This document shows, one piece after another, positions 41,045 through 60,560 of a DNA stretch of 64,000 nucleotides. Every line of letters begins with the position of its first letter. The stretch's first letter is position 1. The stretch comes from Trichosphaerium sp. ATCC 40318. Its lineage: Eukaryota > Protista > Tubulinea. The position numbers and the translations under genes were made by a program. The stretch spans positions 46,897-110,896 of the forward strand of contig JALMLS010000035.1 in NCBI GenBank assembly GCA_038496445.1, written 5' to 3'. The notes below the pieces were generated by a model. That model saw nothing but the letters and a program-made list of their open reading frames with translations. It had not been told where the DNA came from and ran no database searches.

Positions 41045-41181
41045 TACAGTTAACCTGACCTTTACGCCTGTTAGACGGCAGAACTGTAGTTTGTTTTTTC
41101 GGATAAATCCATCCACCTTTGTGCAGAGTGTAGTTATCCTGACATTTACGCCTGTTTTGAGACGGCAGGACTACAGTTGCA
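41045..41181 (-). ncRNA. Candidate structured RNA: two related hairpins (41045-41088 and 41122-41181)
   Basis: Conserved core CTGCCGTCT-loop-AGGCGTAAA(T/G)GTCAGG with compensatory basal stems. G-U pairs form only on the minus strand. Confidence 0.4.
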
Positions 41182-41229: not shown

Positions 41230-44200
41230 CAACACATGTTTCAACTGAAAAAAAATGTGGTAAGCGAACAACGAAATCTCGCTTGTAGAGGGTTGCAAAC
41301 AAAGCCAAACTGAGCGACTCAATGCGTCTTGCTAGAAAATGATTTTTGAAAGATTAGGTTGATACTTGTACGTATTAATTACGCACACCACCGAGTAAGA
41401 ACCTCAAACAGCTTAAATTGAGGGTCAGATCGAAAAGCGTTTCCTGGAAAGCATCAGTTTGTCATTTCACTGAAAACAACCTTGTTTTTTAGCTGATTCC
41501 CAACGCAGGTTTCTAAATATCGAAACATAAAAAAATTACATTGGGGTACCACGATTTACACAAATTGCAGTTTGTGGGTTTCAAAAAGCTAGCGCTTGAA
41601 GCATCAAACTTAATGAGTTAACAACCCAGACATTTTACTTAAACAATCTACACTTGCATCTTAGAGACCTCCTCTTGTACCACTTTAAGAACTTGACAAA
41701 CTTCGAGTAGCCTTCTGTTACCTTCTCCAGCGAATACAACAACTATGAATAAGGTAAGTCAGAACACGTTTTGTGGAAACCAATGAAACGTGCCTTTTTT
41801 ATCAAGATCGTCCATTTCCTGTGTAAGAACGGATAGTTCCTTTATTATTACTGATTTAAATTGCTGATTAACATCTTGTTCTTCGCTTCGAACAGGATCT
41901 CGTGCCCTGGGTTGTACCAGATCTGAGATTGTCGCCATTTTCTTAAAGAAAAACAAGAGTCAGCAGCTAAGAAAAAAAACTCAGTTTCTTACTTTTTTAA
42001 TAGCAGCTACTGATGCTCCTACGGTCCTTAGTTGTTGAATAGTAAAGTAGTTTTCCTCAAGTCGTAGGTGGGTTTTCTTAATCTTCGGTCTAATGTCGGT
42101 AGCAGTCAATCTTGAGGCCCAATTACATAAAGTATTCAACTTTCTTTGAAGAGCTGGATCGACTCCTTTAGCAGGTTCTGTTGTTTGCCTTTTTACACTA
42201 ACTACGACCCAGATGTATTAGATCACACTCGCCTAGTGCTTTATTTGTTTAACGTACTTGCTGAAAAGCGTGCATTAGGTGTTGGCCTTATTTGTTGTTC
42301 AACTGTGTATGTAGGTCCAGAAGGTTTTGGTTTTGCTCTTGGTTGACTCGTGTTCACATTACTCTTTAAGTTTACCTTTGAATTTGAGTATTCCAAGTTA
42401 GAAGGAGGTGGTTGTGGTATTTTGATTAATCCTAAAGCTATCTTGTCTTCGTCATCAAGCTCATCTTCAATCTTTTTTCTTCTTGCAAAAGCTATAACGA
42501 AATTACTTGTCAATGTCCACCAGGGTGCCTATTGGCTCGGGTTGAAGGATTAAAGTAACGTACATTCTCTGGCTTCCATTGTGTCCGTTCTTGGTTTAGT
42601 TACAACCTCACCTGTTGGTGTTTTTTGAGCACCTTCATCCAAAATTGTAAATCTATCCAACAACGCAACAATCGCTGGAACTGTTGTCATGTCCCTCGCT
42701 ACTTCGCCCTATATCTCACCTGTTAGAAATTGATGTAATTCTTAATACGATTATAGTTTCGGATTACACTTGCCTTTTCCTACAGAGAAGAAACAAGTTA
42801 GTTATAAATGTATAGACAAAAAAAAAAGATGAAGATTAAAAGAATGTAACTGTAGCATACGTTCGGAATAGATTTATCAGCCTTCTTCTCCAATAGCATC
42901 TCAACGGTATCTGCACGTCTCCAGAAAGTAGCATAATGAAGAGCAGTCCACTAAAAAAGAAGTAAATCGGGTTGAATAAACTTGGCAAGAATAGTCGTAC
43001 TCCAGCCTTTAGTATGATGTCACGTGAGAGATAGCTTGATAGAGTAGTAACTTAAAATTAACAAAAAAATACGCACCCCCTAAAGAGGAAGAGTCAGCTT
43101 TCTAAAGCGGGAAATATATAAAAAACCAACTGTATCATTTAATGGGGTACCAAATTCACGTGCTTCGCAAAAAAAAAGCAAAAGAGGGTTTTCGGTCGTA
43201 CATCCTGCTTGTTGATATCTAGTCTTTCACATTTTAACATAGCCAAAATAATATCTGGACTGTGTTGACTTGCATAATGGAATGGTGTCTATATAGTGAA
43301 TGTGTTTGACACTATAATAATAATGAAATATGACGTACTTTCTAGCAAAAAGGTAAGTACAATAAAAAAAAACCAAACCTGTCATATTGTCAACGTACGC
43401 CTTCAATCTACAGTTAATAGTTAGTAATGGTTAATAAATAAATACAATCACGTGTGCGTACATTAGCTATATTAGGATCTGATCTGTTTTTTAATAGAGC
43501 CTCAGCAACACGAGTATAACTTAGTTCCGAAGCAAAATGCAAAGGTGTCTGAAAACAACCACTTAACAACCAAAAAACCAGAGCAAAACAACAACTGAAC
43601 GTACCCACTACCAAAGTATTTATACAATAACCAAATATACACATTGTCGTTATTTTTACACTCAAGGAATCGACGTACCCCTTTCTAAAAATAAAGTAAG
43701 ATACCAGAAACTTTGTTTAATTAAAACACAACTGCTTACTGTATCTTGAGCGTCCACTTCTCCTTTGTACTGACAAAGCAACTCTATGGCTTTTGGCCTA
43801 TTACCAGATGCCGCTGCATGCATTGCAGTCTATTTAAATTCATTTAGCATGTCAGATGTTTTGTTTCCGCACCAACTACAAAATGTTAGAATCATTTAAC
43901 TGGTGTTTGCTAATTTGTACATTTGATGGAGCTTTGGCGTTCACTTTAGCTCCTTCGTGTATCAGAAAACGCATAGTCTCCACGTGCCCCCATTGTGCTG
44001 CTACAGATAATAGAGGCTTTTTTGTTAACGTTAGGACACTAACAGAAGTACGACAGAGTTAACCACGACTTACCTTCTGTTGTGTAATCGTTAATTGTAG
44101 TTTTTGAATACCATTGTTAGTATCAACATCCTACAATCATACGTACCCCTTCCTATATTTAAAACGTACTTTAGAGTTACAACTTCAAAATAATTAATAG

Positions 44201-44556
44201 CGTACATACTAAAAAAAACCCGCATTAGTAACAAAACAACACTCAATTTCAAAAAAATTATGTAATCACGTGCGTCCTGAACTGTATTTACTGGATCGTA
44301 ATTTTTAGACCATAACTTTAATGTACTCTTTAGAGCACTTGTCCTTCCTGCCTTAGCTTGCGCAACAGCTACTTTAGAGTTCCCTGAAGTAATGTTGATG
44401 TTAGCACTAGCGTAAGCAAGCAACTTCGTAACTGGCTAACGTGGATTTTCCTCCAGTCCCTGCAGGATTGCCTGAAACGAACTTTTGGCTCTTTTTCAGT
44501 CTCTGAGGCTTTGGATCCTTATCCTTCTTTGATTTACCCCAGAATAACGATGCCAT
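41230..44556 (-). CDS. Ankyrin-repeat protein with 11 microexons and a coiled-coil C-terminal part, 3' end uncertain
   Basis: ATG at 44556. Five full ankyrin repeats reconstruct to 33 aa each once 3-9-nt AG|exon|GT(GC) units are included. Confidence 0.85.
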
Positions 44557-44819
44557 TATGTATTGTCCGTTGTAACCGCGAGTATGAACTGAAAATACAC
44601 TAAGAGCGCTTAAACTTTTTGTTTCTCTGACTGAACCTCTTCTCAAGAATACTTACGGAGTATACGGACTTAGCGCACCGAGTGCTCAGGCTGTTGTACT
44701 CTTATACACCAGCAAAGATCAAAGAAAAGCGTCTGTACAACAGAATTTTTACGGTTTCAAATTCAGTCAATAGCACGGTTATTTTCTAATTGTTTGAAAT
44801 AAACATAGAGTGGAGCCGA

Positions 44820-53800: not shown

Positions 53801-56800
53801 TGAGAATTTAAATTATATGGCAATATGGCGTTAACTACGTACTTCTCCAGAGAGCATAAGAGGTTCCATTATAGTAAGATTGTTCTTTACAAACAATGTC
53901 GCATTAAGCTTATTGTATGTTGAAGGATTATAATAGATCGGTCCAAGAGACGCATTAGCTCGAGGTTGAACAGTTACAACCTGTTTAAAAATACATTAAT
54001 AAGCTTGGCTCGCATAGTAAGGAAAAAAAGGAAGGAAAAGAATTTCACTTATCAATCAACAGAAAAAGTTCAAAAAAAAAAGAAAGAAAGAAATGTACCT
54101 TAGTTGCGCCTGGTACTAAATAAAACGCAGAGCTATTACGAGATGGAAGGTTACAATTATCAGCTTCCTTAAAATCAACCAAACGCGCAGCGATGGGTTT
54201 ATTCGAAGGATTGTATATCCACACTTCCCGAGGAACAGAAGACTCAATCTACAAAAAATAGGTAAACTGTAGTAAAAGAAATCAAAACAAACCTGTGTCA
54301 AGCCAAAATCAATATTCTTATCAACGATAATAGAAGGTTCGGCTAATGCTGCAACTGCTGCAAAGCTACTGTACCCCATGGCTATGTTTGTATTTACAGT
54401 TAGGGTAGCTCTAATATCGCTTTGGCTATCTTCAATATTCTACATAAAGCGCTTAATAAAATAAATCGTGTTCACTGAATCCTGCGTGTCAAAATGAAAA
54501 ATGAAATTACCTTCCATAGTTCTCTACGTTTTTCTAATATATCCAAGTCACTCAATAGCAGGGGATCAGCAACACGTGACAAATCAGTAGTATCTTGAGG
54601 AACCATATCTTCACCAAAATCTTTCTTGTTTGGATCAAACACAAGTGTACCAAGAACACCTGCACAATGTGTTAGTGTTACTCAGAAAATGAGATAAAAT
54701 AGCGCAAGTTATTGACATACTCATGGTGTTAGGTGCTATTGTTGCATTCTCTATTTTTGCAATGAATCTAGGATCCGATGATGTAATAGAAATTACTTTA
54801 ACAGCATTGGAGTATGTAGATGTTACGTTAATACCTACACAAAAACAAGTGAGAAAACTTAACAATACTAGTTTACTGATATCTTACGTTTCGCCTCAGT
54901 TTTACCAGGGAACGCTGGTGGAAAGTGAGTCACAGCTGGATTAATTGTAAGTTCTCCAGCCATGGCTTGGTAATGAACAGAAATAGTCAAATTCTCAAAT
55001 GACGTAGAAATCAGAATAAACCCATCACGTTCCTCCTGTTAATGACGTTAGTTTACCAAAACCACAAAGGATGTTAAAACCTACCTCCTCATCCACTCTC
55101 AATTCTAGAGTAAGTATAGCAGAGTTGCCTGGCGCCAATGAGAAAATATCCGTTTTATCATCACTATCATCAACTGTTGCATCCATGGACGATGTTATTT
55201 CCTGACCACGGCTCCTACTCATTGCGTATCCATTTGAACTCCAAATACTATCAAGTTTCACACGGAGACCAGGTATATCTGTAATAACAGATAATACAGA
55301 GAGAGTTACAGGGTTATGATTTGTAATATTTATCGATTTACTTTGAACATCCCTTACACCTACAAAAACACAAAGAGATGAGTAAAACAACAAAACAAGG
55401 GTTTGGTTTTTTTTGAAATCTTTTCCCGCCTGGAGTATTAATTAAAAGGTGATGTGTACCTGTTACACCATAATCTATCTTATCACGCGGCTCGTCAATG
55501 TGACCAGCAACCGTCCAGTTTAATTTTCCGTGGTAGACGTGAAGAGGAATAGACAATGTTGTAGCATTTGTATAAAAATTCAAAGCAACGCTGTACATCA
55601 TATCTTCCGAATCTGCAGTAAAACCAATAGCCATAGCCTTCCATGTCTCACCAGGACCAACCTAAAGCAATACATCAGAGATAACTCTACGTAACAAATA
55701 GGTGAAGAAATAGAAAAAACAGCATACCAAGGTACTAGACGTGAAATTATGAACAGAAAAATGAGAATCTTCTATTTCGGCTGCATAAAATACTAGAGGC
55801 ACAGAAAACTTGTTTGTAATAACAAGATCTTGATACTTGGTCTCAAAAGGAGGTCCCTCTACCGCAAACGTTGTAGCAGATAAACTATGCCATCAGGTCA
55901 GTATTGAGAATATGAAAAAAGAAGCAAACACCACCAGGTAGAAATAGTTTAATGTAATGATGTTGAGTGGGTTGGGTTTTTTTTTGTTTGAGTACGGGTG
56001 TTGCAAGAACAGCTGACGCACCATCCAATAGAACCTACAACTACCTTGCCTTTATACAGGATTTCCTAGAAACGAAGTATCAGTATAATAGGTCCCCTAC
56101 ACACGATTTCCCGCGTACCATACGCCTATTTATTGGTTGACTGTGGTTTGTCCTTACTATTACTTTACCCCTGAAATCACCCTTAGTTAGCGCTGTATAA
56201 CTCACATTGGCTATCAATTCTTCCTTGCCCGCCGCCAGTAACATTGGTTTAAAATCAATAGATACTGATTTGTCGTCATTTACAAGCGTTTCAAGATGCT
56301 CCAACTAATAGTAAAGTACGTTAGCAACACAGTTGAAATCGTGCACAATTTTTTCACAGAACACAGCTCGCAAAGTAATGGTTGATTACGGAGCTAAAAG
56401 AATCATAAAAACTACAAGCACCTACCATAACATTGCGTTGTCCAGAATTCAATAAGTAAAGCGGAATAGTCTTTGTTTCACCAAGTGACGTTAATGTACC
56501 ATAATCAAACTCTTCGGGCGTACGGTGAATGCCACCTATAGGATCTGTCAATACAAAGGGACAGTGTCGAAACACGTTTAAACCAAAGAGAAAAACTAAA
56601 ACAGAAAAGAAAACATAGCCATAACTGTACCTTGCATAACAACAACCTCCACGTGTATGATCAACTTGTCCTTGTTTGTAATCACATTCACGAAACCCTG
56701 GTATTTACCAGGCACGTGTGGACTATCCGAAGAGAAGTTGACGTTGATGATAGTCTTCTTCTTGCGTGGTGGTATAGTCCACAAAGATTGCAAAGCAGTT

Positions 56801-58616
56801 TCATCAGGTGGTAGAGATAAATGTAAAAACCCTCCTGAAGTGTAAAGCTATTTTTAAATTAACAGTAAGTACTCGTATTACGTAATCTTGGTCTTTTTGA
56901 AAAGCAGAAATTAAAAGGAAAGCATAAAACGCGCTTTCTATAAAATTTTTTTGATTTGTTCACAAACCTCTTCTACTTTAAGCTCTTCTGAGTGCGGGTT
57001 ATATATCTCGATGACAGGGTTGTAAGATCCAGTAACTGGAAGTTTAGCTCCAACAAGAGGCTTTACTTTATACGGATTGCGAATACCGCGCCTATTAATA
57101 ACACATTACGTTAATATAGATATTATGCCAGAATATGCGATCAATAGCAGGAAATAGTAATAGCTCCTTTATCTAGCTCGTAGATGTAACAAGTAAAATA
57201 ATAAAAAGATGACAAAAGCCAACTAAAAAAAAAATTGACAAAAAACTGCTGGCGCTTAGTTTGAGTTCCTATGTGGTATTTTTTTTTTGATGAAGGTGTT
57301 CAAAGCGTACCCTTTTACAGTGTATGTTACGCGACCAATATTGGTTTGTATTACTAACTCTGCGTCTTTGATGCTTCCTATCGATCGCGGTAGAAACACA
57401 ATACGTACACTGGCATTGCCTCCAGGCGGTACAACCTGAGAAAGTATTGAGCAATGCAGTACTAACGGCGGGTTTTTTTTTAATTCTTGGTTAATTGAAC
57501 GTACAGACTGCTTTAAAAACGTCTGATGATGGAAATGCGGGCTGTCAGTACTAATTTGCATCAAATATAAATCTTCTTCCTCTGAAGTATTTATAATCTC
57601 TATATTCTCTACAGCAGGAGTGCATATAGGCCTGTCGAAAAAAAAACGCCATAAGTACAAGACCGAGAATGGATAGTTGGATTGTGGTTCTGAGTATTCT
57701 CTGAAATCTCAATTTTGTTCGTTGTAGTAATTCAATTGCGAACCTACACACGCCAATGCGTTGGACAGCGAGGTTTTTATAAAATTATGTAATAATTCTT
57801 TTTTGATTTTTTTTTTTGTAGTCTTTGAAAACGTATTCTGTACCTCTCTTTAAAATCAAGTTCAGCTGGTTCTATGCGTATGAATACATCTGATGGAAAC
57901 TGTTTGGCATTGTTACCAAGCTCACGCGGTTTAATAGGCCTGCTATAAGTGGGGGTGAGGCTATTTTTTTTTTTTATTTGATTTAAAAAAAGTGACGTTG
58001 ACAGGTCATAAAAGGACATACCCAGCCTTTGGAAATTCTTTAATGATGTCCACGGTGATGGTGGACGTTGTAGAAGCGGTAGCCTAGCAAGGTTTTTCAG
58101 TAAAGCCAAGATCAGCGAAGAAGGAAGGTTTCTAGTTTGCTTTTTTTTGTTTATTGTTGTTTTTTTTTTTTTTTTTTCGTACCTTGGGCTGTTGTTTGTT
58201 CACCCTGCGTGTTAGCGGTACAGGACCAGAATTCGCATCTTCCAGAATGTAGTGATTATGAAGAGAAAGTGTGGTCTCCTCTATATTACGCGCAACATAT
58301 TAGTAATCAAAAGATGGACAAATTGGAACCAAAAAAGAGTGTTTAAACGAAAGAACCATCGATAAAAAAGGAGGGTTTGTTGGGTTCTTTCGGCAATTTA
58401 TACTGAACAACCGACATCATACAGCGTATTAGCTCTGTATTTCATTGTTACTGGTATACACAACACGCCCTCCGCTAATTTAAACAAAATGAGGTTTTTT
58501 AGCTTACCAGACCAACCTATAGATCCCACTTCTCCGTTTACGTTGTCTATGCACGAAATCGTGGCAATAAAGAGGCCAAGAAGAATGGCCCCATACAGAG
58601 TTGCACAGCATGTCAT
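50875..58616 (-). CDS. TMEM131: TMEM131-family protein, multi-exon
   Basis: Signal peptide. IEPAELDF..IVFLPR..GIRNPYKVKPL..IEIYNPHSEELKV..GGFLHLSLP..LWTIPP. Tandem Ig-like PapD/ASH-type domains, VRNNLT motif, TM helix, Lys/Pro/Ser-rich tail. Confidence 0.85.
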
Positions 58617-59250
58617 CGGGCAAAACCTATTTGGATTATTGGTTTTTTGACGTGCTGCGTTCAACTATTGATGGTATTTTTTTTTTTTTCTGGTTAGGCC
58701 GATTTCTGAAAAGAACCGAACTTAAAAACACCTACAAAATGTATGCATTTTCAGAGCACTAAACGAACGTATATGCAAATACTACGGACAGGCAAAAGAG
58801 GCTGCATACTTTCAAGTTTATGCCAAAAAAAAAAAAGTCCGGAATGCAATCAGCGGACTTGTGCGTTTAACCTAGATATCGAAGGAATAACTTGCGTTTA
58901 TTAGCGTGACGAAGTCAGATATTCGAGAGTTACACTTGTTTGTACTTAATAAAATTATTATCGTACAGCATGTGCAAAACTGCGTTTTTTAGTGTGCAAG
59001 CTATTGTTCGCTACAGCAAACACGCAATACAACTAGCACGTTCGCCATAACTGGCTGCGAACCAAAAAAAAAACCGTTACTTTAATTGGCCCTTGATCAA
59101 TATCGAACGTAGTAGTTACGCTCGTTGAAGCTTAACTCTTTTTGTCTTCTCTGGAGTTTTTGTTATAAAAAAAAAACAGTATTTGGTTCAAGAAAGCCCT
59201 TAAGCGCCGTAGTTAGCTTGAACGCGTACTTGTGTGTACAATCTCGTAGC

Positions 59251-60560
59251 ATGGAGGTACTGCAAGGTATTGGTCTAGTTCTAACTGAACTGGTAACAGC
59301 AGGGCCAGCAGCAGTGTTTGCTTCGCGTTCTACTCCAGAAGACCTAGGTACGTCCTTTTTCTGAATACACAGCGTCACCCTTTGGGCTTTGTGTCTGTTT
59401 TAAAATGAAAATTTAATTCTGACGTCTACTGCTGCTCTTCGTTTAAAAGCCAACATCTCTCTAGGCGATATAGATGCAAAATTTAACAAATGTTGTCAAT
59501 TCGTCAGCGAAAACACAATGGCGCTCATGTACACATCGGAGGAAGATTTGTTGTGCGTATACGCCCTCTACAAGCAAGCTTCAGAAGGTCCTTGTCCAAC
59601 AAGTTATTGGTGGTCACTCACAGGCATATGGGACGTATCATACTTCATAAAACAGTACGTTTTACAAACAATGGGGTTGGCGCAACGTATTTTTCTTTTG
59701 TTGGTGAAAATAATAATTATTTGTTTAAAAATCAAACGTCACATTCGTGGTCTCATGCTTATAATGAACCAAGGAAGGCATGGCGAAGCTTAGGAAATAT
59801 GGAGAATGACATAGCCAAGTATCACTACGTCCAGTACTTTGAAGATAATATGCCAGGGTGGGAAGACGCTTTAGAAGATAAAGGATCAAATTCTTTGTTC
59901 AGTAGAATGGAAGAAGAAGAGTGCGTTGTTTTTAAAAAAAAACCCAGCTGTCAAATCAAAACAAACAAAAATTGGACAACTTTTCTTTCAAACACTAATA
60001 CGTATTCTTCCCTAGCACTGCTCCATCTACTAGCCTTTTCGATTTTGCACGTGATGGCACATTAGAACCCCTCAAACAGTTAATAAAAATGGGAGCAGAT
60101 GTAAATGAAAAAGATGAAATGGAAATGACGGCATTACATTGGGCGGCTGACAGGTAAGTAATCAAAAGAAACCATCGCGCTTTGTACCAACTGAATGCCA
60201 CAGGGGATCTTTGCCTGTTGTCAAAGAGTTAATAAGCGCGGGTGCTACTGTAAATGCCCAGGTGAGAGAATTTTTTTGTGTTTTTTTTTGATATCCAACA
60301 CATGACATGTCAAGTAAATATTTGGCCACACATTATTAACTTGTCTTCAACTCGCTAGGACGACTGTAAACAAACCCCATTGCATGTAGCTTACGCTCAA
60401 GGAGACGAACGCCAAGACATTATTGCCTATCTTATAGAACATGGAGCAGATGAAACTATGGAGGACGAAGAAGGTGCCATATTATAACACAACTGCATAA
60501 AAAATAAAAATTAATGTGTTCTTAGGCAAAATTCCAAAGGATATGATGAACGACCAGTAA
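59251..60560 (+). CDS. Acyl-CoA-binding protein with ankyrin repeats (ACBD6-like), multi-exon
   Basis: LLCVYALYKQASEGPC..KAWRSLGNM..AKYHYV, followed by MTALHWAADRG and QTPLHVA. Confidence 0.88.

Follow-up and report, generated by a model that had tools for sequence, protein, structure and literature searches.

A 64,000-nt stretch of the genome of the marine amoeba Trichosphaerium sp. ATCC 40318 (contig JALMLS010000035.1, positions 46,897 to 110,896; hereafter the window, in whose coordinates all positions are given) contains, on its minus strand, an ankyrin gene with 11 microexons of one to three codons between 42774 and 44208. RNA evidence confirmed that these tiny exons are genuinely part of the mature mRNA of an expressed gene. 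We consider it likely that they are constitutive microexons that result from extreme intron accumulation in an intact, expressed, lineage-specific ankyrin gene of an intron-rich amoeba, and that their introns are removed one at a time by intron-definition splicing. Most likely the microexons are a side effect of intron crowding that the gene tolerates, rather than a means of generating variants.

The set comprises six microexons of 3 nt, four of 6 nt and one of 9 nt, with a sum of 51 nt. All are in phase 0, all 11 are preceded by AG and followed by GTACG, GTAAG, GTGCG or GCAAG, and the introns flanking them are 43-122 nt long. AG-N3/6/9-donor motifs occur 14 times in the 1,580-nt region versus a mean of 1.3 in dinucleotide shuffles (maximum 6 in 500 shuffles), and at 0.86 per kb in the remaining window. 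The microexons are listed here together with their state in two partly spliced transcript contigs (L001 and L002) and their presence in two proteins (P0001 and P0003) that are described below. Each is supported by its splice signals, by a unique decomposition of the mRNA gap and by RNA, which in the case of AAG is L002.

44206-44208, minus strand: microexon TAT (Y), hairpin 1; spliced to the upstream exon in L002
44147-44152, minus strand: microexon GAAGGG (EG), hairpin 1; in L002 joined on its upstream side and then followed by a retained intron
44074-44076, minus strand: microexon AAG (K), hairpin 1; the sole canonical solution; lies between two retained introns in L002
43873-43875, minus strand: microexon TTG (L), hairpin 2
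43679-43684, minus strand: microexon AAAGGG (KG), hairpin 3; in P0003
43605-43607, minus strand: microexon TGG (W), hairpin 3; in P0003
43399-43407, minus strand: microexon ATTGAAGGC (IEG), hairpin 4; in P0003
43339-43341, minus strand: microexon AAA (K), hairpin 4; in P0003
43077-43079, minus strand: microexon GGG (G), hairpin 5; in L001 joined on its upstream side and then followed by a retained intron
43001-43006, minus strand: microexon GCTGGA (AG), hairpin 5; in L001 preceded by a retained intron and joined on its downstream side
42774-42779, minus strand: microexon GAAAAG (EK), hairpin 6, which is the capping repeat; followed by a GC donor; in P0001 and P0003

We aligned transcript contigs of four public runs (X1, X2, X4 and X6) to positions 41700-44600. 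Contigs from X1 and X6 matched the window at 99% or more with no differing letters, and those from X2 and X4, the latter contributing three short contigs, differed at a few letters. In every contig that crosses a hairpin the intron cluster was absent and the helical-core exons of 87-96 nt were linked via extra letters. Read on the minus strand, the extra letters at the joints are TATGAAGGG; TT(G); AAAGGGTG(G); ATTGAAGGCAAA; (G)GGGCTGGA; and (G)AAA(AG). At each joint one to three microexon letters had been absorbed by the aligner because they are identical to the adjacent intron-end letters; the letters of AAG, for instance, were aligned to 44017-44019, the identical last three bases of the intron ending at 44017. 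The joint letters plus those absorbed are exactly the 51 letters of the microexons.

The microexon letters themselves were read for X1 and X6 only. For X2 and X4 the comparison is of letter counts between aligned pieces, and these equal the counts in X1 at every hairpin that is crossed cleanly. X2 represents an environmental relative in which about 10 of 1,100 aligned letters differ and the lengths of the microexon segments are unchanged. An exhaustive search for GT/GC-AG decompositions of the mRNA gaps, with introns of at least 20 nt, returned a single solution for each of the six gaps (6/6), and this is the placement listed above. With canonical flanks and with their letters in mature mRNA, the 11 segments are spliceosomal microexons in the usual sense of a coding exon of 30 nt or less. 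The same 11 segments between AG and GT/GC, in phase 0 and separated by 43-122-nt introns, had been proposed in a sequence-only reading of the window. Their coordinates are now borne out by the sequence, the RNA contigs and the unique placement, and their phase and intron lengths by the spliced model. That reading also implied that cDNA should contain the microexon codons, and the codons are present in mRNA contigs of the four runs.

Transcripts that are only partly spliced contain the microexons in their genomic setting. A search with the 69-aa C-terminal exon as query among 1.84 billion protein representatives identified P0001 (289 aa), and P0003 (425 aa) lies in the 90% cluster of P0001; both proteins are exact substrings of the spliced model. 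The contigs on which they were called, L001 and L002, come from one Joint Genome Institute (JGI) transcriptome sample. Both have 0 mismatches to the model when specific introns are kept, and both carry a poly(A) tail after 41555. The retained introns are as follows.

43007-43076, minus strand: 70-nt intron between GGG and GCTGGA with a GTGCGT donor; the sole intron kept in L001, where both neighbouring introns are removed
44077-44146 and 44017-44073, minus strand: the two introns flanking AAG; both kept in L002, where all other introns are removed

Since L001 and L002 show microexons embedded in genomic sequence, the letters in the mRNA have no other source than these genomic segments. These contigs also show that the crowded introns are not removed all together. 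In L002, TAT and GAAGGG are already spliced onto the upstream exon, and by our reading of the sequence the retention leads to an in-frame stop shortly after GAAGGG. Removal does not simply proceed from the 5' end to the 3' end: the intron left until last is the middle one in hairpin 5, whereas hairpin 1 still holds its two 3' introns when the others are gone. A contig of the relative represented by X4 (record 5) apparently keeps the 45-nt intron upstream of TTG, with the downstream intron gone (43830-43920). Its joint has 3 letters versus the 4 predicted by simple retention, and a 1-nt difference at the acceptor of the upstream intron in the X4 strain is a possible cause of this mismatch. The earlier view that the spliceosome of this organism handles 3-nt exons serially is borne out by mRNA and intermediates that contain up to three microexons in a row (3-6-3 nt).

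The gene that contains the microexons has the following features.

41555-44690, minus strand: transcribed gene, comprising a 5' untranslated region (5'UTR) exon, a 5'UTR intron and 23 coding exons, with polyadenylation after 41555 (from RNA joints and loose ends, L001/L002 and sequence); 44690 is the limit of the span given and not a mapped 5' end
41648-44556, minus strand: coding sequence for 521 aa, interrupted by 22 introns, from ATG at 44556-44554 to TAG at 41650-41648 (from the spliced model, with P0003 and P0001 as substrings)
44600-44656, minus strand: putative 5'UTR intron of 57 nt after a non-coding exon ending at 44657 (from a loose end of an X6 contig and GT...AG sequence)
43921-44016, 43740-43829, 43462-43548, 43202-43288 and 42861-42950 (span 42861-44016), minus strand: five ankyrin helical-core exons of 96, 90, 87, 87 and 90 nt (from Pfam Ank matches)

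The encoded protein consists of a basic N-terminal region of about 80 aa that begins as a lysine-rich, non-hydrophobic segment, five ankyrin repeats with a capping half-repeat, and a C-terminal half of about 270 aa. The spliced protein matched Pfam Ank_2 with 92 bits and Ank with 82 bits, both above the curated cut-offs. Four of the five core exons matched Ank individually at E values of 7e-4 to 4e-6, and the match of the fourth exon was weak (E 0.15). The repeats are spaced at 34, 33, 33 and 33 aa. The Pfam match and the 33-residue periodicity identify an ankyrin-repeat protein, as the gene had been classified from its sequence, and the first spacing shows that the accompanying claim of exactly 33 aa in every repeat was slightly too strict. 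A single-sequence AlphaFold model, which is of low confidence (predicted local distance difference test score of 57), shows helices in pairs, and the microexon residues fall in the intervening loops.

Searches of each exon and of P0003 against Pfam found no domain beyond the ankyrin repeats. With HMMER, the 69-aa C-terminal exon had no homologue among the 1.84 billion representatives, matching only its own transcript and one spurious repeat protein, and an ESM Atlas search gave no match above 0.68. The C-terminal half (41648-42708, minus strand) looks lineage-specific and in part of low complexity or coiled-coil. Word-indexed searches with P0001 and P0003 returned the gene itself and generic ankyrin matches of 42% identity or less that cover the repeat region only. 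Nothing related was found in JGI metagenome contigs by an exact 24-nt exon pattern or by a P0003-based scan.

The core exons correspond to positions 4-32 of the 33-position Ank profile (3-32 and 6-31 for two of them), and therefore the microexons supply positions 33 and 1-3. Splicing extends the Ank match to position 2, the hairpin glycine. In the numbering used for DARPins the hairpin reads D1 x2 x3 G4 x5 T6, and DARPin libraries also randomise positions in helix 1. Repeats 1-5 have 15 variable hairpin positions, of which 11 are encoded by microexons, and microexons also encode four of the conserved glycines; positions 13, 14 and 33 of the DARPin numbering are not encoded by microexons. The proposal that the microexons hold the binding positions of the DARPin type is thus largely right, as it stands for 11 of the 15 x2, x3 and x5 positions in repeats 1-5; the helix-1 positions lie outside the microexons.

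The introns that delimit the microexons are confined to a few sites. When the six hairpins were aligned on the T of TPLH (column 0), the introns fell at the following codon boundaries.

Boundary -5/-4: introns in repeats 1, 4, 5 and 6
Boundary -4/-3: introns in repeats 1, 3 and 5
Boundary -3/-2: intron in repeat 6
Boundary -2/-1: introns in repeats 1, 2, 3, 4 and 5
Boundary -1/0: introns in repeats 1, 2, 3 and 4

Hairpin introns occupy 17 of the 30 possible slots at these five adjacent boundaries, and all 17 are in phase 0. No intron was found in the 28 helix-and-loop codons of any repeat. Beyond the hairpins there are five coding introns, with phases 1, 1, 1, 0 and 1. In hairpin 1, four introns split 12 coding bases. 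The coding sequence of the repeat region is about 0.5 kb long, so that its 17 introns amount to approximately 33 per kb. Intron-rich genomes are put at 6-7 introns per kb (PMC3174169), and for Trichosphaerium 8.7 introns per gene, an average intron length of 75 bp and an average exon length of 154 bp have been reported (PMC10521059).

Hairpin and non-hairpin introns have the donor consensus GTACGT in common, and in around half of the introns a sequence resembling a branch site, YTRAY, precedes the AG by 8-23 nt. GC donors occur in three of the 22 coding introns (14%; 44273 GCACGT, 42773 GCAAGT and 41793 GCACGT), two of them supported by RNA joint ends; GC-AG introns usually make up about 1% of introns, far less than in this gene. 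The consensus GTACGT rather than GTAAGT suggests that the 5' end of U1 small nuclear RNA may carry matching changes in this organism. Introner-type proliferation, in which many introns are gained in one lineage, resembles this gene in the number of introns and differs from it in that the 22 coding introns share only splice signals. All-against-all local alignment of the introns gave a mean score of 13.0 versus 12.9 for shuffled sequences and a maximum of 24 versus 26, and we rejected an introner or duplication origin because the intron alignments were no better than those of shuffles. The ankyrin repeats mutually share only 1-12 of 33 residues.

From these features we infer an origin by intron gain, a steric constraint on the microexons and splicing by intron definition. 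In this scenario, 17 short phase-0 spliceosomal introns would have accumulated at five adjacent codon boundaries of six beta-hairpin regions, and the ancestral hairpin codons (x-x-G-x before TPLH) would thereby have been cut into 11 constitutive microexons of one to three codons. The glycine in four microexons and the preserved 33-residue register argue that introns were inserted around existing codons and that the microexons were not born within older introns. The introns may have been gained in an ancestral repeat that was subsequently duplicated, with differential loss among the copies, or may have been gained in parallel at homologous sites in each repeat. Recognition across the intron is to be expected, given that the introns are short (43-122 nt) and that each has strong signals of its own, with a donor of the G(T/C)ACGT type at one end and an AG at the other. 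An exon of 3-9 nt is too small to hold a 3' splice-site complex and a U1 small nuclear ribonucleoprotein at once, which argues for stepwise removal of the neighbouring introns. Removal of the first of these would make the microexon the end of an exon of ordinary size, and the second intron would then be an ordinary one. L001 and L002 are the intermediates that stepwise removal predicts. According to published work, steric interference blocks exon definition of microexons, and helper factors are no longer required when the flanking introns are short (PMC8378409); the introns on the two sides of a microexon are reported to be spliced out in a preferred order (PMC10250204).

Several points weigh against constitutive microexons that arose simply through intron accumulation. 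Intron positions depart strongly from randomness: 17 of 17 are in phase 0 and fall within five codons of a 33-codon repeat, and such a strict phase-0, hairpin-only pattern is not expected from neutral, unguided gain. The exon sequences show no exon-side proto-splice consensus at the junctions. No orthologue that could date the introns was found in the protein and metagenome searches. The order of intron removal rests on three assembled intermediates and not on counted reads, and assembled contigs lose rare isoforms, so that low-level skipping could escape them. A second ankyrin gene in the window, as read from its sequence, is without hairpin microexons, as had been noted before:

About 59450-60560, plus strand: ACBP-ankyrin comparator gene with its hairpins inside ordinary exons

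It is possible, although we regard this as doubtful, that ankyrin hairpin codons are a true hot spot for phase-0 introns in this amoeba lineage, with directed or selected placement and a spliceosome for which chains of single-codon exons are routine. The basis for this idea is that introns recur at the same codon boundaries in six repeats of this gene that have diverged from one another. If it were true, the gene architecture would be one not described before and a natural system in which to study minimal exon size.

The sequence-only reading went further and proposed that the hairpin microexons are frame-neutral specificity modules whose regulated skipping or swapping yields combinatorial ankyrin binding surfaces, as in the micro-exon genes (MEGs) of Schistosoma. 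All microexons are symmetric (phase 0-0, length 3n) so that skipping any of them keeps the frame, and they do encode most of the variable hairpin positions of repeats 1-5. However, no exon-skipping isoform was present among the contigs of six transcript assemblies (the four runs and the two JGI contigs), in which the only variants were intron retentions. Wherever an assembly spans a cluster, none of the microexons of that cluster is missing, the introns of the region contain no spare AG-N(3k)-donor cassette, and the lengths of the microexon segments are the same in the X2 relative. From what is known of the ankyrin fold, skipping would shorten a repeat below 33 aa and often drop a structural glycine, which would be expected to destabilise the stack. 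Microexons also make up only 51 of 1,566 coding nt (3%), and the N-terminus is lysine-rich and non-hydrophobic. We therefore consider diversification very improbable.

Another explanation takes the retained introns as the functional feature: slow, ordered removal would lead to polyadenylated, intron-retaining transcripts with premature stops, and the amount of productive mRNA would be set by splicing capacity or conditions, as for detained introns. In keeping with this, two poly(A)+ retention forms were abundant enough to assemble in one transcriptome, the introns kept are exactly those that adjoin microexons, record 5 of X4 apparently keeps the intron upstream of TTG, and the retention in L002 introduces an in-frame stop soon after GAAGGG. 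Yet intron retention is common in any transcriptome, the evidence consists of assembled contigs, and such a gate gives no account of why hairpin codons in particular are hit. We judge it unlikely, if somewhat less so than diversification. That there are no real microexons at all, the core exons being joined directly in the mRNA and the AG/GT arrangement being due to chance, an assembly artefact or a pseudogene, has practically no probability left. The mRNA contigs contain the extra letters, L001 and L002 contain the microexons in genomic context and match the model exactly, the 521-aa reading frame is intact, and 14 motifs are present where 1.3 are expected; the letters in the mRNA and the exact match of L001 and L002 refute this explanation. 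Thus, constitutive microexons produced by intron crowding remain the explanation that we prefer.

We compared the gene with known systems of very small exons. Plants have conserved constitutive microexons of 15 nt or less, among them 1-nt exons in APC11 and VPS55 and a neighbouring pair of 5 nt and 12 nt in rice (PMC8831610), and CYP621A of Fusarium has a 1-nt exon (PMC12940212). Like those of the amoeba gene, these are tiny coding exons with canonical splice sites that are needed for a conserved domain and are usually missed by aligners and annotation. The plant and fungal genes have one or sometimes two adjacent microexons each, whereas the amoeba gene has 11, with as many as three in succession, and they recur at homologous positions in a tandem repeat. 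Animal neuronal microexons of 3-27 nt depend on SRRM4 or PRP-40, are alternatively spliced and regulated by tissue, and have long flanking introns (PMC8378409, PMC10250204, PMC7821500). They resemble the amoeba microexons in encoding surface loops of interaction domains, in having a size that precludes exon definition, and in the ordered removal of their flanking introns. By contrast, inclusion in the amoeba gene looks constitutive, the host is unicellular and the introns are very short.

Schistosoma MEGs encode secreted proteins, consist mostly of micro-exons with introns of up to 5 kb, and vary by alternative splicing (10.1101/2023.06.21.545858; PMC4015677). They share with the amoeba gene symmetric exons with a length that is a multiple of three, so that skipping keeps the frame. 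The amoeba gene is nevertheless not of the Schistosoma type: its microexons account for 3% of the coding sequence (51 of 1,566 nt), its introns are 43-122 nt long, its N-terminus is non-hydrophobic, and no alternative form was seen, with no skipped form in the six assemblies. Recursive splicing uses zero-length exons, AG/GT ratchet points that serve the removal of long introns (PMC6110457). As with the amoeba microexons, a 3' splice site nearly abuts a 5' splice site and stepwise removal is forced. Recursive sites, however, leave no letters in the mRNA, whereas 3-9 coding letters are kept at every site in the amoeba gene, between short independent introns.

Single microexons of 1-3 nt are known, and the chain in this ankyrin gene is an extreme variant of constitutive microexons. 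The literature that we searched describes neither serial single-codon exons nor microexons in ankyrin hairpins or in Amoebozoa; the closest cases in it are constitutive microexons of plants and fungi that occur alone or in pairs. The gene is a natural substrate for asking how the spliceosome defines a 3-nt exon and in which order crowded introns are removed. It also poses an evolutionary puzzle in that homologous codon boundaries of a repeat have been hit repeatedly and always in phase 0. Modelling of this gene by standard aligners and gene finders will go wrong, as it probably will for many others in the genome, with ankyrin repeats of 29-32 aa or broken frames as the result.

Scans of the whole window for donor spacing and for AG-N3/6/9-donor motifs revealed no second microexon cluster of this kind. 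A group of GTACG motifs at 57310-57504 was considered as a candidate and rejected, because it reads as ordinary coding sequence. The exons of the neighbouring gene at 56400-58700 on the minus strand are ordinary, and one of them carries an internal GTACGT as coding sequence. Because this exon reads through GTACGT, the donor motif alone is insufficient to mark an intron. A search of the whole window against Rfam gave no match at gathering thresholds. Downstream of the poly(A) site of the ankyrin gene, the intergenic sequence contains a two-copy direct repeat of 25 nt (41048-41072 and 41132-41156) with copies that are 92% identical and 84 nt apart.

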